A stretch of DNA of 64,000 nucleotides from contig DF237066.1 in NCBI GenBank assembly GCA_000708835.1, positions 126,856 through 190,855 of the forward strand, in the 5' to 3' direction. The stretch comes from Klebsormidium nitens (Eukaryota > Plantae > Klebsormidiophyceae). A program made the position numbers and the translations under genes. Position 1 is the first letter of the stretch, and the number at the start of each line of letters is the position of its first letter. The notes under the pieces are model-generated. The model saw nothing but the letters and a program-made list of their open reading frames with translations. It was not told where the DNA came from and did not search any database. Shown here piece by piece: positions 1-55,108 of the stretch.

Positions 1-1855
1 TGCACATGAACATGCAACTTGTGTACTTGCATATATGCAAATAATAGCATATAGCTCTTGAGTCCCACCTTGCCATCACCAGCTTGATAATGGGAATTCA
101 GCCGTTCGGGTATGCGGCTACCATTGAACATGAGCAGCAAAGTGGCAACTTAGGGCAGTGTGGGCGACACTACAATATTTTGACTACTAAGCTTCTAATC
201 GTCAAAACGCCCACACAATACTGCGACACTGCTATATAACTAAACCACTAGCAGGATTCCTCGGCCACATGTTTCCTCGGCCAGTCTGCCAGTGTCCTCG
301 GCGCTTTCTTTCTTGTATACACATAACCAGCAAATGATCATCGGACGCAGTTTTGAGGCCCACGAAGTGACCATCACCACGTCGGATCCTTCTTGAAGTT
401 CGCCAACAAGAGTCACACGGTACACCGGCTGCTCCGCACTAGTAGTACCTGCTAGCTTAAATGTATCTTCGTATCTTCAAGTCCTCTTCGAGTAATAAAG
501 TTAGGTTCCACATAACACACATGATAACATAGATGCTCTGACTTATGTCTTGTGTGCCATAAACATGCCATAAAGGCAGCCAGAGGATGCAGCATGTGAC
601 TAAGAGCGATTGAATACACAAGCAGCTGGCTTACGCGCCGTCCAGGCGCCTAAGAGCCTAGCCATACAGCGACGATGGTCTCTTTTCGTACTCGCCGTAG
701 CCAAATTGGCCATAGGCTTCTCATGGCATACATGTATGAGTTGTGTGTGTCTTGATCTTAGAGCTGCTATATCTTGGGCTATGCTCGACTCTACCAGCTA
801 TGATCTAAGTACTATCGACTCGACATTGACGTGCAGGGCGTCGACCGGAATGCCGGGTGAGCGCTCCTCTTGCGGTCCTCGGACCAATGAGAACGCTTCA
901 AACAAGATTGAGAAGATAAGTATGGACCTGGTACAGGATTTCAGCTGGAGCCACAGTGTACAAAGCTGTACGCAAACAGGACGCAAACCGTAGATGAAAA
1001 GCTGGCCAGCCTGGCACTCTTGCACTCTTAGAGTCGGATCTTAGAGTAATCCGGTCACAAATTACCTACAAGGTTCAGTATCCTGATCAGGGCCCGGTGG
1101 CCCACACTAGGCCACGTCCTTCCACGTGGAAGACTCACCTTGGTCCCCAGCCCATGTCGAGTTCGCGACAGGCTCTGGATTACGGATGTGTACGAGCTGG
1201 GTCATGTCTTCATCATCATGACGTCAATACATACGTCCCCGACGTATGCGGCTGCCCGCCCGGAACTGGACTCTGTACGTGTAACTACGTACTACCTATC
1301 CTATGTTGCGTGCTGCTTGCGGAAAGTCAACGAGCCTTGCCGGAATCGTACTGAAGCGTACTTGTTTGCTGCAGAGCTACTAACTCACGGAGGCTCTTAC
1401 TGGTCCTTCCCACTCTTGTCAGAATCTAAACTCAGTAGTAGTCAGTACTAGTCAGTAGGTCGTACCGTCGCACCGGTGTGCGTTATCATACCCGGATCCA
1501 GCCGCGATTCCAGGGAGTCATAAACAAGCGCACTGTGCACTGTGCACACAGCTGCACGGGCCACTGTACATGTACACGATCCAGTGCTCACTCGGTCCAC
1601 TGGGTACATCAGTCTGAAATTAAAGTGAGGCGGAAAACCGCCGCCTTGAACACTGAAGTAATACTAGGTAGTGACTAGTACTAGGTAGTAGAGGCACTTT
1701 GCGAACAGATTAGGTAGTCGTATCCAAAAGCTGAGCGGTCGTTCAAAAGGTGCGGCACTAATTGAAGCTCCGGAGGGCTCCGCAAACTCCCCACAAGCCC
1801 CGTCGGTTTTGGGGCGCGCCCATTCGCAACTTGAATTTGAGAGCAGGCAAGAATA

Positions 1856-3295
1856 ATGGCGGCCTGGCCTTGGCAAGCTAAGCCCGGGATCCACCAAAAG
1901 CTGGCATGGTGCGCATGGCTGACCATCATGGCGTTCTTCGCCATTGCCTCGCTGGCGACGTTCTGGACCGCGGTAAGGCAGCGGGCGCGGCCGGTGAGGG
2001 TCACCTTCTTTGATCGCAAGGAGCAGCTCTACTTGCCTGACGTCCAAATCTGCCTTCTGGACGGCAATCGGGGAGAACCTGAAGGTGACCTCACTTCGCA
2101 GAATAGATTGAGTGAGGCGCTGCCGGGGGACTATGTGCTGGACGCCGTTGGCAGGGCCCGTTTATTGGCTGATAAGAAGCCACTGCCCCAAACATATAAC
2201 ATCACCATAAAGACATTGCTGGCGGGAGTAGGCGTCGACCCTGATGCTGATCCTAGCAACAAGACCGCTGAGCTTTATTATTCGAATTTTTGTGACCCAG
2301 ATGTCACCACCCGGGTTCGGAGCCGATTTGTGGAAACGGACGAAATTTGGGAAGACCATCGGGGCTTTGAGTATATGACCAAAGCAGATGAGAACCTTTG
2401 GGATCTCAGTCCGAATAAGACCATTCCCTACTTCTATAGCCTCCCCCGCGATAGCAACGACCTTCCAAGGAAATCCAAACTGGATTACACAAGCCAGGAA
2501 TTTGCAGTTGTCCTTTCACAGGCTTCACCGGACGAAAACCAGACGGGGTATTTATCTCCATTTGGAGTTCTGGAAGGAGACAACTCCAACCAAGGATCCA
2601 TTTCAGGGGTGGTCATTGGAGCATTTCCATATACTGCCTGTATGACATTCTTCGTGTCCCTATGCCCAAAACAGCGGCAAGACATTCTGTCACGGGCAGG
2701 TGCTCCTATTGTTCTCTCCTTGAACGGCACTGGCCCTAACTTCAAATATTTTGGGGTCTCCATTGGTCAGCACGACTATGGCGCTCCTCTTTATGCTGAC
2801 GGCCTTGACATTGTTTACCAGAAGGCAAATTTGAACTCAACCCTGAATTTGGTAGTCACCCCTCGTTACAACAAGCCTATCTTGAGCCTCTTCCAGTTGC
2901 TCAGAATCGAGAAGCTGCCAGTGTTCAGCTGGTATTCATACAGCCTGGGTTCGGTCCTACCGACTTCAAATCAGGGGCAGCCATCTAGGCCGGGAAACGA
3001 GACAATCAATTTCACTTTTACTCTCGAAATCTCGCTCTCAAGTAAAGGAGTCGAGCATGTAGTGGCGCAAGAACCCCTTTTCGGAGTCTTTGGCACCATT
3101 GGAGGTCTGTGGACCTATGTTCCCCTGCTCTTCGGTCTTCTCTATGCTGCCACGCCCAGTGAATTGCAGCCTACATGGGCCTGGGAGAAGGCAGCCTGTT
3201 TGGTCCCCTCCCGTTGCCGGAAGGTGCTTGGGAAAGCGAAGGAAGAAACAGACGTCGGGAAAGCGGAGGGCACACCAGGGCCGGAGAAGGTTTGA
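1856..3295 (+). CDS. Intronless 479-aa two-TM membrane protein with a large central loop; PAC(TMEM206)/DEG-ENaC-like topology (paralogue A)
   Basis: Long uninterrupted ORF. N-terminal hydrophobic helix (AWCAWLTIMAFFAIASLATFW) followed by RARPVRVTFFDRKEQLYLPDVQICL. C-terminal helix LFGVFGTIGGLWTYVPLLFGLLY. Many N-x-S/T sequons in the loop. Both ends align by eye with the ORF at 14633-15703. Confidence 0.75.
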   Translation: MAAWPWQAKPGIHQKLAWCAWLTIMAFFAIASLATFWTAVRQRARPVRVTFFDRKEQLYLPDVQICLLDGNRGEPEGDLTSQNRLSEALPGDYVLDAVGRARLLADKKPLPQTYNITIKTLLAGVGVDPDADPSNKTAELYYSNFCDPDVTTRVRSRFVETDEIWEDHRGFEYMTKADENLWDLSPNKTIPYFYSLPRDSNDLPRKSKLDYTSQEFAVVLSQASPDENQTGYLSPFGVLEGDNSNQGSISGVVIGAFPYTACMTFFVSLCPKQRQDILSRAGAPIVLSLNGTGPNFKYFGVSIGQHDYGAPLYADGLDIVYQKANLNSTLNLVVTPRYNKPILSLFQLLRIEKLPVFSWYSYSLGSVLPTSNQGQPSRPGNETINFTFTLEISLSSKGVEHVVAQEPLFGVFGTIGGLWTYVPLLFGLLYAATPSELQPTWAWEKAACLVPSRCRKVLGKAKEETDVGKAEGTPGPEKV

Positions 3296-4874
3296 AGCTT
3301 CGTTCTTGGGACCGGGTTTACATGTACTAAGGTGAGAAACCTGATTGATCTCCGGGATTTGGGAATTGTGAGATTGTGAGTCTGGAAGGTATCAAAGCTT
3401 TCCTTTGGCAGGTCCTGTGGCAGTTTGCTTGCAAAGCTCTTGGTTTTGGTAAAAGCAGGGACTTGGTGGTTGGTTCCTGCTGAAATTGCTGAGGTCAGGC
3501 ACAAGATTTCTTCTTTTGGGTTTAAAAGAGGGCTACGTATTTTAGGTCAGAAAGTGACATGTGAATGGGCAGTAGAAGTCGTAGCCGGCGCCGTCCACTT
3601 GATGATAGTAAGTCTTTAACTAAAAAGTCGTGTGCCTCGATCACATGCAAGATAAAGTGTCAAGCTTTTCTCCCTCTGTAGGGAAGACTGCGTTTCTCGT
3701 CAGCCTTATTTTCAAGAGCCTACCAGAATCTTCAAATGAAGACGTCAGGCCAAGAGTTCTGTCATCAAAAATAAGATCTGTAGATTTGACATCATTTCAA
3801 ACCCTTCTCGCTATTGATCGACGGCTTCGATGAGTCGTTTAGTTGACTCCCCACAAGCGAGTTGGTGCGTGTAAGATTTCGAGAGTGGGGACCAGAATCC
3901 AGCAGTGTGCCTTGGTTGGAAAGCTGAAACTGCAAACGAAAAGCAGGACCTATGAGTGAACGGCTTTTCTTGACGTACTAAGAATATCCCCCAGATTACC
4001 AACCACTTAACATCCTCTTTGCGGCAAAAGCTTGACTCTGAACACAGCTCAGCGACTCTCTTTGTCCTGCAGGGACCTGGATGTTTATCATGGAAGGAAA
4101 GAGCAGTCGTTGCGTCAAAAGTTGTACGATTTGGATATCGACCTAGTAGGGCCCAGACTTGATGGCACTTGCCGGGCTCCATTATGTACACCTAGTAGCT
4201 GAACAGAAGTACGTCTGGTATTTGGATTGCTATTAGCGTCAAAAATTCGTTTGGTAGGCCGAAGTGTAAGTTGCTCGGCCAGGATACAGTTCATGTAGAA
4301 AAGTCCAGACTTAATTTCTAGGTAGTATGTGTTGTATGTTCTCTTGAAAGAGGCGACAACTGTTCTTTTACCTTCTTCTGCGAGTTTCGAACAACTTTTA
4401 GAATGTCAGAATGGTTTGGCTTGTAGGACGACCTTTCTCACTAATGACCAACCGGTTGAAAAAGCACGTGGGCACACTAGCTTAATAGTCAGGGTGATAA
4501 GCTTTTAGAAAATCACAGGATTATGTAGCACGATTCGCTCTGTTTGCTAGGTGCCAGTGGCAATGCACGTGGTAGAATAGAACCGTCGTGTTAATAGATT
4601 GTACTAGTTGAAACCTACTAGTTTGATTTTACAAGGATACCTCCCTGCAAGACTTCCAATGTGATAAAACAATGTTTGCTAGCTAGCCTAATTTCACTTG
4701 CTGCCAGGCGGCACTCCACACGGCGGAGCTTCTTACGTTCTGCAACTTTCGGTCAATAATGGAGTTTCAGCTCATGTCGCATATGATCGCTGCAAAAGTT
4801 GTATATACTCAAATGACTTCACATGCTTGTTTGATTCATGCTTGCTGATGTCAGATAAGTGTCCGCTGAGACGA

Positions 4875-21000: not shown

Positions 21001-24000
21001 CGGGAACATGGATGGAGTAGGCAAGATTCCTGACGCGGAAGACCGACTCACATGCAAACAGGATTTTACCGCTGTCTCGGCAGGACGGAAAGTTGGCAAG
21101 GCGACGAAAAGAGACTAAAGGAGTATGCCGTAGAAACGTGCTGCGCCAGAATGACTCACTTTGAAGGGAAGGCCGATGAAGGAGAGAGTGGGCGCAGTCC
21201 CGACGTGGAAGACTTGCTCGTACACGGGGTGCACTCGCTGGTCCTCCGTAGAAACTAGACCGGATTCCAGAAACGAGAATTCGTATACGTACCTGTGGGA
21301 ACGCACATCCTATTAGCAGAGAGCATAGCTTATGCCGAAGCATGGTTTAAAGAAGGATATATTATCGCTACAGCGTCCGGTCCCTTTCAGACAAGTTTCT
21401 GTTGTTGGAGATGTAATCAAAGGACAAGGAAGCACGCATTAGGTGCGCGCTCTCGATTGAATCAAAGGTGGGAAAGTGGCTACATGATTTAGGCCCTTTT
21501 GGAAAATGAGTATGAGTCCGGATCGACCTGAAGCATCCTTCGGGAAACAGATCCTCCCTGTTATACCCTTGAAGCCAAGCTCAAAACCCACAGCAAGTCC
21601 TCGTTGTAGCCAGCGAGCCTGATGGAAGTGATAAAAAGCAGACCAGACCGGTGCAGGTTAGTCTCCGACCATTGCGTTCGAAAGAAGGAGTCAAACGTAT
21701 CACGCAGCTTTTGGGCTCGGCAGGGACCCAAGTTGCGGCTGAGTAACGTTACAGTCGAGGTGACGTCACTGGCTCGGGATGCAGTTGCAGTTCAGATGAG
21801 GACAAAAGGGAAACTGATCAGAGGAAGGTTTCGATCCTTCGACCTGTGGATTATGAGCCCATCACGCTTCCAGCTGCGCCACTCTGATGGATTGAACAGA
21901 TCGTCGCAAGCTTTTCACTTAGACGAGCAACTTGCAGTGATCAGTGCCTGTACGTCACTTTTTCTTTCCGGACCGGTTGGGGGCACACTGCGATCCGTGT
22001 AAGATCGAAGCATGAAGACAAACAGGGCACTCTGAAGAACAAGGGGTTCTCAATTGCAACCTACCACCTCGCAGTGAGCGGATGCAAAATTTGGTAGAGG
22101 CATCTTCTAGTGGACAGAAGGGCAAAAGGGAGCCAGAATCGTGCGACGCCCTTTGTTCTAGCTTTGAAGCGCGATTGAACAGCGGACAGGGCAAATGGTG
22201 CTAAAGTAAACGGACAAAAAACTGGGGAAAGAGTGGCGCGTAAAAGTGTCGGCGGCCGGTTTTGAATCGACGAACTTGGAGAAGATGCATCGATTCTTCG
22301 CGCGTAAGCGCAGTGTTTCATTGCTACACCGACAAATGGTAATGGGACGCAGAATCTCATGTACGAGTCGCTCGACGGAGGTAACGTCACGTAACGTCAC
22401 GTGACGTCACCTCTGCACACATCGACCCGCTGATGAAACACTCCTCTGAGGAACAGCGAGAATTATCTTTTTGCCCTCCTTTTCGCCAAGGCGCCCCAGC
22501 ATCCTTCTGAAGGTTTCCTCGCGCGATAGGTTCTGAACAAAGCGATGATGCGGGCGATACAATTTGAACAGAGACATTCTTGCAGCGGTCCAGACCGAGG
22601 TTCCAAGCGCGCTCACCCGGTACAGTGGATGATGACGTCCGCAACGACTCGGCTGCCGTCAGCGAACTCGAGACTCCCATCAGGATACGCACGCGTGACC
22701 TGCCGAGGAAAGGGAAACGTCTTGTCAAGCAAACTGCGTTTCTGCCAGGATCTCAAAAGATATTGGGCTCATACAAGTAGCCGGAAGTGGGAGATCAGGG
22801 ACCAATAGCATACGTCTTCAAGGCGACAATTTTTCAGCCATGTTTGAAGCCAAAAATTGCCTATCGACCGGGTCTGCGTTTGCAGGTTTGGTAGACCGAA
22901 TTCTCGGCATGGTGCCGACAAAATCGATATAGGAAAGCGGCTCCTTAAACTCATTAAATTCACCACGGGTCTCGGATGCAGGATCGGGTTGTGTTTGCTG
23001 CGGCTCAAGCTCCCAGCTCAGTGCCGACAAGTAAACACAAGGAACGGCTCCTTCTGTTGTTCCAACGAAACAGCCTGAAAGGTATGGATGCAATTTGATT
23101 CCAGATCGTAGTAACCTAACCCACCACGAGTTTTCGGTGCAAGTTCGGCGGGATTTGTCGCGGCTCGTCTTTGCCGCTCCGCGCCAGAAGGAAGAAGGCG
23201 AAACGGTTCCTTCAATGTTTTAGCCCCATAAAACATCATTGAAAGCTAGAATTAGTTCCAATAACCCAACCCACCACAAGTTTTCGGTGCAGGGTGGGCG
23301 GGGTTTGTCGCGGCTCGTCGTTCCAGCTCCGCGCCAAAAGGACGTAGGCGAAACGGTTCCTTGAAGGAAACAGCCCCAAAAAACTGCCATCAAAACCAGA
23401 TCTTAGTAACCTAACCCACCACGAGTTTTCGGTGCAGGTTCGGCGGGGTTTGTCGCGGCTCGTCTTTCCAGCTCCGCGCCGAGAGGTACACCTCGGAGCA
23501 GTGCTCTGCGAGCTCCCGGGAAATGTCCTCTCCGCTTGCAAATGCGCCGATCAGGACCACGGTCTGGCCGGCGAACGGGCCGGGGGTCCGGTAGTTGTGG
23601 CTGTGGAGCTGGCGACCCGGCCAAGAGGCGATGCCTGCAAAATGTGTGAAACTTTCGGGTTTGGAAAGTCTGCACTCTAATTCCCGACTTGGTGTTTTCT
23701 TGACGGGGGTTGTTTGACTGTGGCTGTGGAGCTAGGCCTGTTTACTGTAGACTGCTTTACCGGTTTGAATTCTGACTTGGAGACTTTTCGAGAGTCGGGG
23801 CTGTCATAACCCAGAGTTTAAAGCCAGGTTCTGGGTTTTAGGCTAGTGCATCAGCCGTCTCCAGGTGTTAGAGATACAGCTAAGTCGGATTGCACAGAGG
23901 GAGATATGTTACATATGGCGCTTTATAAAGCATGAGCTGCTTTTATGCATACCGGCCAAGGCAAAACGGCGTGCTTTCTTTTTCAGGCAGGCTCGAGCAG

Positions 24001-41672: not shown

Positions 41673-43118
41673 CTAGTATAAGAAACTTTGTAGTTCGTCC
41701 AACAAGGCTACGTGTTTTCCTGGTGTGTTAGCTATATCTAGAAGATGTGTAGACGAAACGAACTGAGGGGGTTCCTTGTACTGCACATCGACATGCGGAT
41801 AAGCTCTCTGGAGCTCTACAGCTCTCGTCACCAGACCCTCAATTGGCTTGTGAAGGTTGTCAAGGTTTACTATCGTCTTCTCCAAGTTTGGACAACACAA
41901 TAAGATGGTGGAAAACAACTTGAAGTCCTCCGCTTCGGTCAAGGTGAACTGAACGAGCTTGAGCCTCTTAAATTGCAGAAGGTGTTGCTGCACCTCAGAG
42001 AGTGTGACTTGGTAGAGTTGCAAGCTGGCATTGCCTAGAGATAGCCCATCTATTGTCCTGGGAATGTGGTTCATGAAATTGAAAAGAGACTTCCCTACAC
42101 TTTCTTGGTGCCAGGTTTCCACTTGGAGGTAGAACCGCTTAGAGGCTCCAAATCGTTTCAAAAGATCCATCACAGCATCCATCTGCCAATTGCGTCCACT
42201 CAGACCCAAGATTGACAGCTGAATTTTGCAGGCAGGTGTTTCCAGGACCTCGATCGGACCTTCCAAGAAGAGGTTCTCCAGATTAGGTGCATGTAAAATT
42301 AGCCGCCCAAGTCCAGGAATCCCTTTCAAAGTGGTCAAAGTGGGCGCATCAATAACCACTTCACTGTTGTCTATCTGCATTTCTTGCAAGACTAATTTCT
42401 GAAGGCTTGGAGCCTTGAAGCGCGGTTCTTCTAACCCTTGACAGTGTTCCAGGCAGAGCTTCTTGAGCTTGGGCGAGCGCTCAAGGAGGGTGTGCAGGAA
42501 CTGATCGGAAAGCATTGAGTGTGCTAATCGAACCTCTAGCAATTCACTGAACTGCTGCCTGGTTACAAGTGGCTGAGTGAAAGGAAACTCTGAGCTCATA
42601 AGCCAAAGAGTCTGAAGTGGCAACCTCGCTATAAGCCCAAACAAGTGTTGGCAAGCTTCGTCACTCTGCTTTATCTCAGAGCTGTTCAAGAAAAATGTGC
42701 GGAGCCTGGGCGCCTGCCGAAGAACAGCCGTCAGAAACTCAATCGATGCCCCCGCCGGAAACTGTTCTCTCCACTCATGCACGTAGCTTAGTGTCAGACC
42801 CTCAAGATGAACCCCAAGTTGATTCATCACTGCGGCGGCTGCCAATGGTGCCGCACTGTTCAACTCCCAAACTAGATGCTGAGGCGTCTCTTGTTTGTCC
42901 AAGTTCTGAAAACGTCGGCAGACCGTCTTCAGTTGATGCAAGGCACTCGCCGACAACCATGTCCGATTTGGACCTATCTTCGGAAGCTTTCCTCTCTCTT
43001 GCAAAGTTGAGTAGCTCCTTGCCGAATTCTCACAGGCCTTTCGCAAGATCAAGGTTACCAACTCCTGCGACAGCGTGTCAAAAGGGCACTCGATATTCTG
43101 GCGCCCATTGCCAGCCAT
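41673..43118 (-). CDS. Intronless F-box/LRR (RNI-like) protein, about 481 aa
   Basis: F-box-like start PFDTLSQELVTLILRKA followed by LxxLxL repeats (LKKLCLEHC, LQKLVLQ, LTTLKG, LENLFLE, CPNLEKTIV). Likely ATG at 43118. Confidence 0.72.
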   Translation of the reverse strand: MAGNGRQNIECPFDTLSQELVTLILRKACENSARSYSTLQERGKLPKIGPNRTWLSASALHQLKTVCRRFQNLDKQETPQHLVWELNSAAPLAAAAVMNQLGVHLEGLTLSYVHEWREQFPAGASIEFLTAVLRQAPRLRTFFLNSSEIKQSDEACQHLFGLIARLPLQTLWLMSSEFPFTQPLVTRQQFSELLEVRLAHSMLSDQFLHTLLERSPKLKKLCLEHCQGLEEPRFKAPSLQKLVLQEMQIDNSEVVIDAPTLTTLKGIPGLGRLILHAPNLENLFLEGPIEVLETPACKIQLSILGLSGRNWQMDAVMDLLKRFGASKRFYLQVETWHQESVGKSLFNFMNHIPRTIDGLSLGNASLQLYQVTLSEVQQHLLQFKRLKLVQFTLTEAEDFKLFSTILLCCPNLEKTIVNLDNLHKPIEGLVTRAVELQRAYPHVDVQYKEPPQFVSSTHLLDIANTPGKHVALLDELQSFLY

Positions 43119-43438
43119 AATGACTGCGTCAAGTGCTCTTGGCGCCTGCAATCTTTGAGTGATATCGTGATTGAAGAAGCACCACTGCCGACTGGGACAG
43201 CTCGAGGTTGGGTTCCTCCACTCTGCGGCGCCTCCACTTGGAACTTGGAAGTGCCACTGGACCAGGGTAGGTATCGTACTATCGATTTATCATTACCGTA
43301 CCTAAGCTCCTCATGCCAGTCATGCAAAATGGACAAAGCAGGCTAGCAGCCGAACTTTTCTCGGAAAAAAGTTGCGGACGCCGGTTTGCTACTGACCGGA
43401 CATGGAACCGCCAACAAGCAACCGGGCCCCCCTGTGAC

Positions 43439-44204: not shown

Positions 44205-46228
44205 ATGAAGATTCCTCGACGAGCAAAGCCCTCTCGTCAAGGCCTAGGCATGTCCCCCTTTCTTCTTCCATTTCTTGCCTTGCCCCTCCTTGCCTGCTGG
44301 TCTCTGGGTGTCACAGCGCACGGTGACACCACTAGCGTCATTCAGCATAGAGAGGCCTTTGGGGAGTTGGCACTACACAACGCGGCAGTGAAAGCAGTTG
44401 AAGTAATCAGCAAGCTTCCGCAGTGGCGGTCAGACGCGCAGGCCACTATAGTTGGCTCGCTTGAGGATGTGAATTTTGCTAGTACCACCAAGTATGACTA
44501 CAAGGTTGGCGGATTTGAAAGATGGCCAGAAGGTCTCGAGTTCTCATTCAGTGAGGAGCCGGAGTTGTGGGAAGAGGTCGGCAGTCTGGCGCTACGTGAT
44601 GGGGAAGTTGAGCAAAATGGTGACACAGCATTAGTGGTGAGGCAACAACTAGGCATGGGACATTTGGCAACCCTGCCAGAGATAGACGTCTCTGGAACTG
44701 TGGAGCTGTGGTTTCCGGGAAGTCCAAACCTGAGACTGGCTTTGCCGGTAAGTTGGTAAAGAAATTGCATTTTCTACGATTGCTATATTCTTGACATCCT
44801 TGATGAGCAGACACTCAAAGAGACGCGGCAGTCAACGGGCTAGTGTGCTCAGTCGAAGAGCTGTCGGCCATGCGTTGCCCTAGTACTCCTGTTCTACTGA
44901 AGTGTATTCTTCTCAAGCTGACACTGTTGCCTTGAACAAGAGTATTATTTGCCGTGCATGTATCAATCTCAATGCCTTGCATAAACCTACATTGTTGCAA
45001 CCTGGAGGAGCAAAAATATTGGGTTTAAGACCTGGAGGGCACTGGAAGCTGCCACATGGCATGATATGAGGTTGGACTTATGTCAGGCAAAGGGAGAAAG
45101 TATTGCTGAGGAGCACTGTTCTCTTTTCTGCAGCATGACGTGGAGGCGGGCCCTTTGAAGAAGGTCGTCGTTGCAGAAGGGGCAACAGTGACAATAGTTG
45201 GCGCATCAAAAATCTCATTGGCCCGTCCTCTACGGATTCCCTTGCCTCCAATCGATTCTCCAGAGGAACTGGTCGCAGCAGATGTAGCTCTGCTTTTGAG
45301 GACCGCCGCAAGTCGGTCTGAGAAGCCTGTGGTCAGCCTAGTTGTGGTGGGGGCAACCGCTCTTGTGTCAAAAAGTCCTGTCAGCGAGAATGCAAACGCT
45401 ATCGCAGAAGCAGCAAGGCTCAAGGTGAAAAGATTGTCAGCCGGTGCCCTTGAGTTGTCCGCTCGTGACAATCAGAGCAAGGCCAGCTCTCGAGGAGTGG
45501 CAGCAGAAGGATTGTGGCCCTTTCCTGGTCTTTCAACGTCTGACGACAGGATCATTGCCATCGAGACAGCACTCAGGGAATATGCTGGCAACTCGACCAC
45601 GTTCAACCTTCTGAAAGCGGAAGCGTCGGTGAGCAGCGAACTCATTCTGGTCGGATCATCAGCAGTGCTTTGCTTGACCATGTTTGTTAATCTGCATAGA
45701 GGACTGAATCAGGAACAGGTCCTTTTAGGAAAGTCGTGTCTTTCTGTCGACTTTTCCATATTGCTTCAAGCAGGCTGCTCTCAGGACGCGAAAAGCTTTG
45801 TATCTTCTTGTGAAAGCCCTGTGCTTTCGATATCTGACAACCTACAGATTCCTCGTGAGGAGGACATCAGTCGGTCCACTGCAGATTTGAGACCTTGTGA
45901 CATGATGCACTTTCTCCTACAGGCTCTCAGACTTGTGCGGATGCAGCTGAACCTAGAGAAGAAGCTTCCACAATCTACAGGATCCGGACATGGAGTCCTG
46001 GTGGAAAGGTCTGACGATCTTGACGAACTAGACTCGGAACAGCAAACTTGGGAAGTCGTGGTAACAATGGGAGGGAGAAGCCAACCAGAGCTGTTCTCGG
46101 CTAGACGCATTGGGGCTTCGGTGGGGACTGTTTCGTTGTCTTGGTCAGTAGCTACTGGTAACGGCACGTTTGTCGCCCCAGAGCCCTCCACATTGAGTTC
46201 GGTTGGTCTTATGGATCTGGATGTGTAG
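44205..46228 (+). CDS. TIN1: TUNICAMYCIN INDUCED 1-like secretory-pathway protein; exons 44205-44747, 45134-45628, 45923-46228
   Basis: Signal peptide (PFLLPFLALPLLACWSLGVTA). The junction LRLALP|HDVEAGPLKKVVVAEGATVTIVGASKISLARPL resembles the plant TIN1 family core as I recall it. Second junction KAEAS|ALRLVRMQLNLEKK. Confidence 0.78.
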
Positions 46229-50600: not shown

Positions 50601-53600
50601 CGCAACAGCAACTAATTGGAGTCACGATTTGAGGGCACTGTATGTCACCGACGTTTAGCTGCGGCTGTAGCTGACATCACGTGACGTCAGCACCCCACCT
50701 CATAGTTCGCTTTGCACCGCAACTGCTGCATCCAGTGGGGCAGGTTGTTGTCCAGCCGCTTGGCGAACGGCTTCATCCACACCACGCGCGCGCTCGCGTT
50801 GCGCGGAACGAGGCCGGAACCCGTCGGCTTCGCCGGAACGCCGGAACCGTTGGCGGGCAACACGTGGTGAACGTTGGCGTCGTACCTGTGGCGGTACAGA
50901 AGATTCAAAAGTTGGAACAGAGCAGAGACAGAAAAGAACAAAAACAAGGAAAGGAGCACGTGATTGACGAATGGGGACGGAAGAGCAGAACGGAAGAACG
51001 GAACGGATCAACTCCGATAACTCTCGTGTGACCTAAGAGCCGTGTGACCTAAGATAGGCACCCGGGGGACGGGTGGGGTTGGTATGGTGGTTAGGGTGGG
51101 TTAGGGTGCGGGAGCGGGTGATTATTTGTGTTAGGTTTTTAGTTTGATGTGCCCGGGTAACTCGTATCTTAGGTCACACGCCCGTTAGGTCACACGAGCG
51201 TTACCGGTATAACGGATCATATGTGAAGACGCAAAGAGAGCGTGAAATGGGGGTCTGGAAAGCGAAGAGCAAGAACGGGGAAATGCGCATCCCAGGGTGC
51301 GTAAAATATTATCATCTTTATGGTATTATCTCCGCAGTGCTTTAGTTTAATTTCAGACACAATTTAACAAAGAAAATATTGAATCAATATCTTTGATAAA
51401 AGCAGGCGACGAGGGTTTCTTACCAATCGAGGCGCGCGTTGCGCGGGATGTTCCGCAGGGTTTCGAGGTTTCCGCCGAACGCGGTCGACGGCGCGCCGCG
51501 CTCGACGCGCACGTGGCCCTCCAGGGACTGGATGAAGTGTTCCAGGTCGAAGAGGTCTTGGAACTTGCTGCACGTGACACGTGGCGCAAAGTGAATGCTT
51601 GGGGCAGGGTGGCTATATTCTGTCAGGGTTTCGAGGTTCTTATGGCTCCAGGGTCTAGATAACGTGGGCAGTTCCGAGAGGTCCTGCCATGTCTTTCAAG
51701 AAAACAGAAAGGCGCAGCTGACAGCTGTTAAACGAGCATGGCTATTTTCTTAGCTTCACAAGGTTCTCGAGTCTCTGAGAATCGCTGATCTTGTGTTAGA
51801 ACCTTCCCTATGGTTTCACGACTGTCAAGTGATCCTGTTTTGTGGATGTTGCCTGTCATGTGTCTTAACGCCTTACTGTCCGAATCCATCAGATCCTTGT
51901 GCCTGATTCGTTCCAAAAGCCTTCGTTCCATCTCTCAAGAGGTCGGTATGATGCAAGCGCTTCTTCCGTCATGCACATCCTAACGTGGCCGCATGTTTTC
52001 CTTCGACTCTATCGGGCAGCCAGCAGGAAGGCTCTTTTTACTGTTTGGTCGCGCAGAATAGAGACGGATTCTGTATCGGTCGATGGAAGTCGGAGCACTA
52101 CGTTCGCTTTTGGGGCTTCAAAGCGCACAAGTCGCTGCTTCGACCGCCTAACTGCGGTCACGTCGATCTCAAGCAGGCAGTTCCGTCAAGCAGAATGTGG
52201 ATAGGACTTACGTGTGGTCGTTCCAAACCGCGTGGGCTTGGAGGTACGGTACCAGCAGGGTCAGGTTCAGGTACCGGGCCAAGGCCACCGCGTTGCAAAC
52301 CTGTAGTAAGACTTAGTAGGAATCGAAACAGAGCCGTAAGACTCCAAAGCTGGTTGTTGAACCACTTCTATATACAGTTGCGTAGAAGTCAGGGCGTCAG
52401 CACTCAAGAGCAGTTCTGAAGCTTCTTCGAAATAGTACGATAAGTGCGCGCCCAGAATCAATCGTTCTGACGCCGCCACATTTTGACTTTGAGACAGCTT
52501 CGAATGAGCGCCCGTTCGTCTCGACATGTACCCGCTTTACTGGATCCATTTCGATATGGGCAGAAACCGCTCACAAAAGACGTCCGTTATCTTCACTTTG
52601 CAGATGCTGACGTCGGGGCGCAAGAAATCAAGAAGCTCGCGCGAAGCAGAAGAGCACGACACGCGTCGCGGAAAGCACATTCGACTGCACGGCACAAGGG
52701 CTTACCGCTGCTCGCTGCTGGTTAAGACCTCCGTTACACTGAACCATGAGGTAACCCGTCGGAACGTACGGCGCTGCACGAGATGGGTAATGAATTTCAA
52801 TGCTCATCGATCTCCGTAACTTGAGATCTAGTTTCCTCCAAAGTACAATCCGTCAAGTGCCAGTTCATAATTGGCAACTGCCGAATTGCATGTAAGGACC
52901 CTGAGCCTCGAAGTGTCAACCTGCGCTGTTAACAAAGGCCGTTCGGTGAGGCTGACGTCACCAGAGCAGCTCGTATACGTCGGCAACCAGTGCGCCCAGA
53001 CCACAGTTGAAACCAAGATTTCCGACTTACGTTCTTCCGTTGCCATCTTCTCGAGGCAAGGCCGGAACCCCTTCCGGTCCGGAGCCTTCCAGAGGTCCAG
53101 CTGGCGAGAGCCTCCCTTTTGCTGACCCCTTCCCTCTTCCGTCAAAACCACTCCCTTTTCAGTTTCCGTTTCCGCTTCCGTTTCCTCTTCGCTATTATTA
53201 TTTGCCCTCTTGGGGGCCGTCGCTCTCGGCCGCTCTTCCCAATCCGTTTCCGTTGCCGTTTCCATATCCGTTTCCGTTGGCGCACCTGTCATTCCAGTCA
53301 CGACCAGCCCTTCAGATCCACGCGACTTGCGCTCTCTCGCCCCCGCCGCCTCAACCCTACTCTCTCCTCCTTCTCGACCTGCTTCATCAACCGTTTGCAA
53401 CCCCTCTGTTTCCTGGACCTTCCCCACCCCCACACGATTACGTTCCGGTTCCGCTACGTCAAAACTCTGCTCCTCAACGACTCGTTCCGCTGTCGTTCTC
53501 GCTCCCATCTCCGCATCCTCTTCGCTCACGCTTCTCGCACTTAGTTCAGCACGCACGTCGTCCAATCTGCTGAACCCTCGCCACCACCCCGCCGCCGCCA

Positions 53601-55108
53601 CTCTCCCCCCAACCTCGTTCTTGGGAACGCCAGCATCCGTTACTTCATTACGCCCCAGACCTATCTCCCCGCTTTCCTTTTCCCTTACTTCCGTGTCCTC
53701 TCCCGTATTCTCAGCTCCCGCATGGAGCTCGCGCTTCTCCCCCTGTAACATTTCATTCGACTCCCGTGCCAGCTGTGCTAAACCTGGGGACGACTGTCCT
53801 AATCCTGTGTCTGACAGCTGTTCATTCTGTGCCGACGGCTGTCCGAGCGCTTCTGACAGCTGTCCGAGCCCGTTTGACAGATCCCCGTCCCCCTTTGACA
53901 GGTGTTCAATCCTTACTGACAAATGCCCGTGCCCCTGTGACAGCTGTGCGTGGCTCTCCGACAGCTGTCCAACGCTGTGCCCGTCACTGTGTCCACTGTG
54001 CGCGTGCGACTTTGACTTTGACTTGTGCTTGCTGACTTTGACGATGGTAGCGGGCCTCGCAGTCAAGTTCGCGCCGCCTAGTAGCGCTCTGACACGTGGC
54101 TCGCTGAGCGCTGTGCTTTGGGACCGATCTGGGGAGAAGTCCTGCATAAAGAGAAGTTTGCTTTACAGGTCTGCAGAATTTGTCAATAAGTGCTCTTCCT
54201 TCTTTCACTGTGGACTGGCCTAGAAATCAGTCTCCCGTGGATGCGAAGTCTGGTTTACCCGCGGGTGTATGTACGTGGCTGTTGCATTCTGTTTCGTCTT
54301 GCCTGCAGTTCGTCCAGTTTCGTCTGGGCTCTCTTGCCAAGATGCATTGCAACTGATGTATTAAGCTGTCAGCAGTGAAGGAGTTTGCCCACACCTGGTA
54401 TTTGGTGGTTGTCTGGAATGTGAGATGCAGACGATTGCTGGATATATTGCTGTGACTTAAGAATCGAAGTTTCGCAACGTACAACCTGATTCCACGTACT
54501 CCCATCAATCAGCTGCTTTGGTCCTTGCCATTGACAGCCCCTTTCTGCCAACTGTCGTTTCTGTTGACCTCGTGTGTGCACGGGCTCTTTTCACTATACA
54601 AGAAAGCTGCCTCCAAAGCTCGTAACTTGCAGCACTTGCATGAAAGCTGTCAAGTGGGTCCACCGAGCAATAGATACAACACTCAAGCAGCCCCACCTTC
54701 ATCTCTTCAGCTGTCTTCTAGCCATTCCCCGTTTCATTGTAGATAACCGACGACAACAAAAGCATTTGCATGCACGGCATTGTTGCTACCAGACCTCACC
54801 TGGTTCACACGAGAAGATGACGACAGCACTGCCGTCACAAACAACGCCGTCAACGCGAGCGCCACTAGCGCGTTGCCCGCCCGCCGCACCTCCTTCATCC
54901 AACCCCCTTTCTTTGAAGCCAAAACCAAACCCCCATCGTGGCCTTTTTCGTACACCCCCTGAGTCACTGGCAAAGCGTCCACTTTCTGCTTGCATGGCGG
55001 CGCGGCAGCCCAGCTTGAGCGTTTTGCGGTGCGCGCTGGGTTAAAGGGCGGTGGTTCCAGCTTAACCAGGGTTTCCGGAAGGGTGCTGTAGCTGCGCGAT
55101 CGCCCCAT
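47616..55108 (-). CDS. Plant-type O-fucosyltransferase family protein (DUF246/GT106-like), 10 exons: 55108-54800, 54141-53031, 52773-52706, 52300-52212, 51567-51424, 50885-50699, 50264-50091, 49565-49389, 48711-48503, 47955-47616
   Basis: Type II TM anchor and a long stem, then [80 protein letters not shown]...DVFIP...GNM...GHR and NPSECFC. Confidence 0.9.
48790..49045 (-). repeat. Two degenerate intronic copies of the start of the O-fucosyltransferase exon at 48711
   Basis: Real exon: LYGGPESLAPFKALFPRTSAK. Copies: LYGGPASLAHFKALFPRTSAK (~48885) and CGGPVSLAPFKVLFLRTSAI (~49035). Confidence 0.9.
51011..51210. mobile_element. 200-bp intronic MITE with ~45-bp TIRs and a 9-bp TSD (Mutator-like)
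   Basis: Left ccgataactctcgtgtgacctaagagccgtgtgacctaagata matches the reverse complement of the right end, ccggtaacgctcgtgtgacctaacgggcgtgtgacctaagata. AACGGATCA is duplicated at 51002-51010 and 51211-51219. Confidence 0.85.

Follow-up and report, generated by a model that had tools for sequence, protein, structure and literature searches.

A window of 64,000 nucleotides (nt) of contig DF237066.1 of the streptophyte alga Klebsormidium nitens was analysed, with the focus on an open reading frame (ORF) at 1856-3295 of the forward strand, which encodes a two-pass membrane protein of 479 amino acids (aa) whose predicted fold is probably that of the PAC and DEG/ENaC ion channels. The frame starts with an ATG, is the longest one open within the first 8 kb and has an in-frame stop at 1838, 18 nt upstream of that ATG. 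A word-based protein search identified its product as the hypothetical protein KFL_001170170 of K. nitens (P0001), to which it is identical save for a gap of 72 aa. Transcript evidence was taken from Logan contigs placed on the window, which come from four runs, each of a different study. The contigs of the four runs begin at 1725, 1735 or 1783 and cover the region up to 3329 without a joint and with zero differences to the window; none was placed upstream of 1725, and no upstream ATG was found on reading the 5' untranslated region (UTR). A joint from 3329 to 4071 (cut +2) is present in the contigs of all four runs, and the border letters define a canonical intron at 3332-4072. This is the only intron of KFL_001170170, it starts 36 nt past the stop codon, within the 3' UTR, and it is spliced in all four runs. 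An earlier note on this DNA had described the gene as intronless, which holds for the coding sequence (CDS), uninterrupted by any contig joint in the four runs, and fails for the transcript, from which 741 nt are removed. The same note had named a lack of transcripts as a point that would tell against it, and transcript contigs of four runs are present.

The public gene model differs from the transcripts in one respect. It encodes only 407 aa, without aa 77-148, as it splices out a GT..AG segment corresponding to these 72 codons, through which the transcript contigs of the four studies run unbroken. Moreover, aa 77-148 are conserved as protein in the closest relative found, which is 58% identical. 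Since the mRNA retains these 216 nt and the closest relative conserves the segment that they encode, the annotated KFL_001170170 protein is too short. KFL_001170170 is a real, transcribed and spliced gene with an intron-free coding sequence.

The full-length protein is laid out as a 15-aa N-terminus, a first transmembrane helix (TM1), a loop of about 365 aa, a second transmembrane helix (TM2) and a 46-aa tail. Kyte-Doolittle peaks are found at aa 16-40 and aa 407-433, and a weaker peak at aa 247-271 is built as β-strands in the structure model described below. The topology proposed in the earlier note, two transmembrane helices with short ends around a long loop, is thus borne out, and the two motifs quoted there are both present, RPVRVTFFD...LPDVQIC after TM1 (aa 45-66) and ...GTIGGLW at TM2 (aa 413-419). 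The loop holds eight N-x-S/T sequons (aa 115, 135, 187, 228, 290, 327, 381 and 385), those at 115, 290 and 327 being common to at least three family members, and four cysteines (66, 146, 262 and 270) that are invariant in a four-sequence alignment (A3). Together, the sequons and the conserved cysteines fit a loop that faces the outside of the cell or a lumen, with both ends of the chain in the cytosol; of the glycosylated loop of the earlier note, the sequons are there, and the glycosylation itself is predicted from them. The N-terminus reads MAAWPWQAKPGIHQK, and the family conserves FPW in it. After TM1, the residues P46, T50, D53, L60-P61-D62, Q64 and C66 are invariant in A3, and the linker between strands β11 and β12 is conserved as S-x-K/Q-G-V. 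TM2, which reads PLFGVFGTIGGLWTYVPLLFGLLYAAT, contains zero serines and zero charged residues, and follows in alignment A6 the conserved pattern GG-x-W-x-x-V-P-x-x-x-G-x-x-Y. Only a loose T-D-V-x-K-A-E-G motif in the C-terminal tail is common to the family (A3).

In order to place the protein among its relatives, 1.84 billion representative proteins were searched exhaustively by HMMER with a two-sequence profile as query, and four proteins only were retrieved: the public model of the gene itself (P0001), a protein from a JGI metagenome contig (P0002, 58% identical), the K. nitens paralog KFL_000240410 (P0003, 32% identical) and a protein from a Logan contig of SRR14092360 (P0004, 31% identical). 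The taxonomic distribution, which the earlier note had wanted checked, is accordingly limited in this collection to Klebsormidium-type sequences. Word-based searches with the protein, the family profile or P0003 gave no further relatives, and of the 143 pattern matches produced by a scan of metagenome contigs with the family motifs, none was related. Within the window, a search of all ORFs with the family profile (hmmsearch) revealed an unannotated divergent paralog with an E value of 7.4e-18 and 22% identity, situated about 11 kb from KFL_001170170 in a tail-to-tail arrangement. This paralog has a MAFPW N-terminus, TM1, the LPD motif and a TM2 containing GGIWFFVPLLF, and its ectodomain is far smaller and different, without the four conserved cysteines of the family. 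Its exact sequence is absent from the protein collection searched. Judging from these comparisons of sequence, the family is tiny, lineage-restricted and multi-copy in Klebsormidium.

The constraint acting on the gene is unevenly distributed along its length. The metagenome contig carrying an ortholog (L001) aligns only across 1837-3298, with 70.6% nt identity, and the similarity stops at the borders of the CDS. Against the 58% identical relative, the ratio of nonsynonymous to synonymous substitution rates (dN/dS) is 0.14 in TM2, the most constrained part, followed by the post-TM1 strands β1-β2 (0.17) and the β-core (0.31-0.37), and reaches 0.70 in the variable ectodomain (aa 71-250). The constrained core consists of the transmembrane helices together with the strands close to the membrane, and the ectodomain further out is fast-evolving, which is the pattern expected if the helices and these strands form the working core of the protein. 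Transcription and splicing, the existence of relatives (58%, 32%, 31% and 22% identical) and the low dN/dS of TM2 and of the post-TM1 strands place the gene beyond chance. A separate observation concerns the two foreign contigs, each of which carries a one-base frameshift within the CDS, at L001:2894-3030 (after TM1) and at L002:1671-1730 (before the strands leading to TM2), representing either assembly errors or decaying copies; the frameshifted pieces were used separately and unaltered.

Table 1. Features of KFL_001170170, of its protein product and of the paralog in the window (positions in the 64,000-nt window).
Feature	Position	Strand	Evidence
5' UTR	1725..1855	+	Transcript contig starts at 1725 (X1, X5), 1735 (X2) and 1783 (X7)
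CDS, 479 codons and TGA, intron-free	1856..3295	+	ORF list, transcript contigs
Segment of 216 nt (GT..AG) spliced out by public model KFL_001170170, kept in mRNA	2085..2300	+	Gap of P0001 against contigs
3' UTR intron, 741 nt, GT..AG	3332..4072	+	Joint in contigs of 4/4 runs; border letters
3' UTR exon 2	4073..4400	+	Transcript contigs, placed as far as 4400; end estimated from record lengths at about 4660-4730
TM1, aa 16-40 (model helix 12-44)	1901..1975	+	Hydropathy; AlphaFold2 helix with pLDDT 64-75; inside sub-threshold ASC match
Ectodomain, aa 41-406, predicted extracellular or luminal	1976..3073	+	8 sequons, 4 invariant cysteines
Post-TM1 strands β1-β2, RPVRVTFFD...LPDVQIC, aa 45-68	1988..2059	+	Alignment A3; model strands 48-53, 62-68; dN/dS 0.17
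Best-modelled β-core, aa 251-404, including β11, SSKG linker and β12	2606..3067	+	AlphaFold2 strands, pLDDT about 55-68
TM2, aa 407-433 (model helix 407-431)	3074..3154	+	Hydropathy; alignment A6; dN/dS 0.14
C-terminal tail, aa 434-479 (46 aa), predicted cytosolic	3155..3292	+	Topology
Unannotated divergent paralog, 356 aa and TAA	14633..15703	-	Family profile against all window ORFs

The structure of the protein was predicted with AlphaFold2, without templates, from a six-row alignment (A4). The resulting model has a mean predicted local distance difference test score (pLDDT) of 43.9 and a predicted template-modelling score of 0.47, and TM1, TM2 and 11 strands are built at pLDDT 55-75, with strands at aa 48-53, 62-68, 115-123, 254-265, 285-304, 320-338, 356-359, 384-394 and 399-404. 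When this model was compared with the PDB by Foldseek, ranks 1 to 21 were taken by structures of PAC (also ASOR or TMEM206), except for rank 3, which is the DEG/ENaC channel PDPNaC1 (9jf7, E 3e-4); the best match is 7ji3_A (E 8.4e-6, prob 1.0), and ASIC1 appears from rank 22 onwards (E about 1e-2). VIA-align, which is independent of Foldseek and was run against 48,161 representative chains, likewise placed PAC or DEG/ENaC channels exclusively at ranks 1 to 11. In the alignment to 7ji3_A (Z 9.0), 236 of the 259 PAC residues (91% of the chain) are matched, from TM1 to TM2, and PDPNaC1 (9jf7_A) reaches the same Z of 9.0, followed by FaNaC (8.0), ASIC1 (7.9) and ENaC (7.6). Below rank 11 lie helix-only matches with Z of at most 6.0 and the cargo receptor chain Erv41p (3zlc_B, Z 5.6, 152 residues aligned). 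The likeness extends to the ectodomain taken alone, which aligned to the ectodomains of PAC, ENaC and ASIC with Z 7.6-8.1 and a root-mean-square deviation (rmsd) of 3.4-4.2 Å, the individual chains being 8h8f_A (Z 8.1, rmsd 4.2 Å, 167 residues), 9blr_A (Z 7.6, rmsd 3.4 Å, 138 residues) and 7cft_A (Z 7.6, rmsd 4.0 Å, 156 residues). A search by shape in the ESM Atlas gave first an ASC cluster (TM-score 0.42/0.50), then two orphan clusters of Mucoromycota and, in fourth place, TMEM206. A first AlphaFold2 model, made from two rows only, was unfolded (pLDDT 29) and was kept as a negative control, for which neither Foldseek nor VIA-align gave a single PAC or DEG/ENaC match. As the control model has the same sequence, the matches come from the modelled three-dimensional arrangement and not from composition. 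The comparison of an AlphaFold model with known structures that the earlier note had called for thus ends with PAC/TMEM206 and DEG/ENaC on top, for a model of low confidence, and we consider it probable, as far as this model can be trusted, that the Klebsormidium family has the PAC/DEG-ENaC fold.

Several lines of evidence at the level of sequence were examined alongside the model, the scans being made with the single protein, with 4- and 7-row profiles and with sub-profiles of the N-terminus, the ectodomain and TM2. The Pfam family ASC (PF00858), whose gathering cut-off is 23.6 bits, gave a sub-threshold match to the protein (E 0.33, 10.3 bits; aa 11-68 against profile positions 18-75), and the paralogs P0003 (E 0.0092, 15.5 bits) and P0004 (E 0.076, 12.5 bits) also remained below the cut-off. 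These matches lie in the same register, from TM1 to β2 (profile positions about 18-80), in three of the four members that carry TM1. They are to be taken as a hint and not as a passed test, because they stand below the cut-off, on a stretch with a transmembrane helix in it, and come from three proteins that are related to each other. No family member has a Pfam match to TMEM206 (PF15122) at E up to 10, no match to P2X (PF00864) was found, and the pair ERGIC_N/COPIIcoated_ERV (PF13850 and PF07970) is likewise without a match at E up to 10. An NCBIfam scan with the single protein or the family profiles gave nothing significant, and no PDB chain sequence was matched by the single protein, by the family profiles (E up to 10) or by the sub-profiles. 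The hallmarks of DEG/ENaC channels are an HG motif before TM1, a G/S-x-S selectivity filter and a cysteine-rich thumb with many conserved disulfides. The 15-aa N-terminus has no His-Gly, the filter is absent from TM2, and the cysteine-rich thumb is absent, the ectodomain having four conserved cysteines only. The GxS motif of DEG/ENaC is mentioned in PMC6663466. None of the sequence features that define ASC or TMEM206 places the protein in either family, so that the resemblance to the PAC/DEG-ENaC superfamily proposed in the earlier note survives as an architecture, in a low-confidence model, and not as family membership, with ASC below cut-off and TMEM206 and P2X unmatched. Language-model features agree weakly with a PAC-type reading; among named families TMEM206 scores 0.84-0.86, just behind Y80K_N, and the nearest entries overall (0.92-0.95) are unannotated two-TM clusters of the ESM Atlas.

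A more detailed comparison with the DEG/ENaC/ASIC channels reveals both likenesses and differences. In addition to the topology and to the in-register, sub-threshold ASC match on TM1-β1-β2, the algal LPDVQIC stands at the place of FPxxTxCN, the motif found after TM1 in DEG/ENaC channels, the modelled β11, linker and β12 lead into TM2, which is preceded by IGG, and the shape matches (Z 7.6-9.0, and the first place of the ASC cluster in the Atlas search) point in the same direction. On the other hand, the confident parts of the model contain no helical finger, thumb or knuckle domains, and the HG motif, the filter and the cysteine-rich thumb are lacking. PAC is the best structural match of the model and has, like the algal protein as predicted, short cytosolic ends and two transmembrane helices around a compact, mostly β ectodomain. 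Nevertheless, the structure-based identity to PAC is only 6-9%, the algal ectodomain is about 100-150 aa larger, with an unmodelled insert (aa 70-253), the inner end of the algal TM2 has no conserved basic residue, the algal family is multi-copy and, as stated, the TMEM206 profile does not match. PAC, ASIC and ENaC have the same 12-stranded β-domain between two transmembrane helices, with undetectable sequence homology (PMC7904269); a family with the PAC/ENaC fold and no sequence match is thus precedented, because these three share a fold without sequence homology. Nearest by features and by shape are two-TM clusters of the ESM Atlas, namely the "transmembrane protein" of Mucoromycota and PF27811 (Y80K_N) of ciliates and streptophytes, which show no sequence relationship to the algal proteins by HMMER and which might belong, as yet unrecognised, to this class of folds as well.

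A number of observations weigh against the assignment of this fold. The model is weak, with 318 of 479 residues at pLDDT <50 and about aa 70-253 unmodelled; no sequence method reached significance, the ASC scores of 10-15 bits resting on 55 residues that include a transmembrane helix; the paralog in the window has no ASC match in Pfam; and the three DEG/ENaC hallmarks named above, as read from the sequence, are missing. AlphaFold2 may have been trained on ASIC structures, and could fall back on an ASIC topology for a two-TM, β-rich protein. Neither ASC nor TMEM206 is listed as a neighbour of the ESMFold model of P0003 in the Atlas (pLDDT 0.50); the neighbours listed are Mucoromycota orphans, Y80K_N and ERGIC/Erv proteins. 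Furthermore, a caution given with VIA-align is that models lacking any real match often have a best Z of 7-8, and therefore the case rests on the exclusive list of matches and not on Z.

From these points it may be argued that the protein is an orphan two-pass membrane glycoprotein of some other fold, its likeness to PAC and ENaC being an artefact of a low-confidence model and its function unrelated to ion conduction. A mean pLDDT of 43.9, a two-row model that does not fold, sequence tests that are all below significance and Z values of 7-9, which can arise without kinship, would be in accordance with this explanation. We regard it as unlikely, since an artefact would have to account for the top 21 Foldseek matches and the top 11 of 48,161 VIA-align chains falling in one structural class, with none for the control, for an alignment that runs from TM1 to TM2 and takes in 236 of the 259 residues of PAC, and for ASC matches in the correct register. 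In addition, the Mucoromycota clusters are neighbours common to the AlphaFold2 model and to the ESMFold model of P0003, that is, of a paralog only 32% identical.

A second explanation accepts the β-domain fold and denies the channel, the protein then being a receptor, an adhesion or a sorting protein, e.g. an early-secretory cargo receptor similar to Erv41/Erv46-ERGIC3. Two transmembrane helices flank a luminal β-sandwich in these proteins too, and Erv41p is found in the VIA-align list, its Z of 5.6 being below the 7.6-9.0 of PAC and ENaC; the ERGIC_N/COPIIcoated_ERV clusters, close by shape to the Atlas model of P0003 (TM-score 0.38-0.42), have no counterpart in the Pfam scans at E up to 10. 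An outer ectodomain with a dN/dS of 0.70, in which the paralogs are very different, is what is seen in recognition proteins, and no recognisable selectivity motif is present. However, it is TM2 that is most strongly constrained, its glycines, proline and tryptophan being conserved, which would be unusual for a mere anchor, and we judge a non-channel role of this kind to be quite unlikely. A divergent receptor of the P2X type, a family of trimeric channels with two transmembrane helices and with reported members in some green algae, is highly improbable, since beyond the same gross topology the P2X chains stand far down the Foldseek list (E 0.09-0.11, prob <=0.08, TM-score about 0.1), none is in the VIA-align top 50, no Pfam match exists and only four ectodomain cysteines are conserved; P2X identity was rejected both on fold (Foldseek E >=0.09) and on sequence (no Pfam match).

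Returning to the PAC/DEG-ENaC fold, the further proposal is that these proteins form a new lineage-restricted, fast-evolving family of two-pass membrane glycoproteins that act as subunits of a trimeric channel, and on this proposal we find the scales evenly balanced. A prediction of a two-copy complex with ESMFold2 reached 0.14, the mark being 0.32, and counts neither way. In such a channel, three subunits would enclose a central pore whose wall is formed mostly by TM2, with its GG-x-W-x-x-V-P-x-x-x-G-x-x-Y pattern, and the fast-evolving outer ectodomain would receive the stimulus, which could be protons, a ligand or force. Movement would then be passed to the helices via β1 and β12, which are directly continuous with TM1 and TM2, respectively, and via the conserved β11-β12 linker. 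The ion selectivity is unpredictable, because there is neither a G/S-x-S filter nor a conserved basic residue at the inner end of TM2.

The remainder of the window contains several other features. A 492-aa frame at 41673-43151 on the reverse strand is F-box/leucine-rich repeat (LRR)-like and matches the plant F-box-associated LRR domain PF24758 (E 2.3e-12), and two further long frames, of 439 aa at 52828-54147(-) and of 362 aa at 45140-46228(+), have no Pfam match and no match to the family described here. The composition is skewed at 52-54 kb (GC 0.554, GC skew -0.18). A tRNA-Met (CAT) gene lies at 21816-21888 on the reverse strand, and a tandem repeat with a 150-bp unit (2.6 copies, 80% matches) occupies 23101-23480.

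According to the literature, TMEM206/PAC has no homologs outside deuterostomes, where it occurs in vertebrates and a hemichordate (PMC6663466), and beyond animals DEG/ENaC is reported only from a few heterokonts and from the filasterean relative Tunicaraptor (PMC10507113). Full-text literature searches returned no report of PAC or DEG/ENaC from Archaeplastida, Klebsormidium or plants, and nothing relevant on PF27811/Y80K or on run SRR14092360. We may go one step further and suppose that the channel architecture built on the PAC/DEG-ENaC β-domain is old in eukaryotes and not an invention of animals, with families unrecognisable by sequence in streptophyte algae, Mucoromycota and others, and that the Klebsormidium proteins are stimulus-gated trimeric channels, the first of this type in the plant lineage; in this wide form the idea is doubtful.

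The present work corrects the public gene model KFL_001170170 and adds one unannotated paralog. If the assignment of the fold is true, a plant-lineage family with the PAC/ENaC fold would imply either that the architecture is far older or that it arose by convergence. The subunit is minimal, intron-free and easily cloned, and would lend itself to electrophysiology aimed at which parts of the fold are essential to gating. For Klebsormidium, it would represent a new channel type in an alga that serves as a model for plant terrestrialisation.

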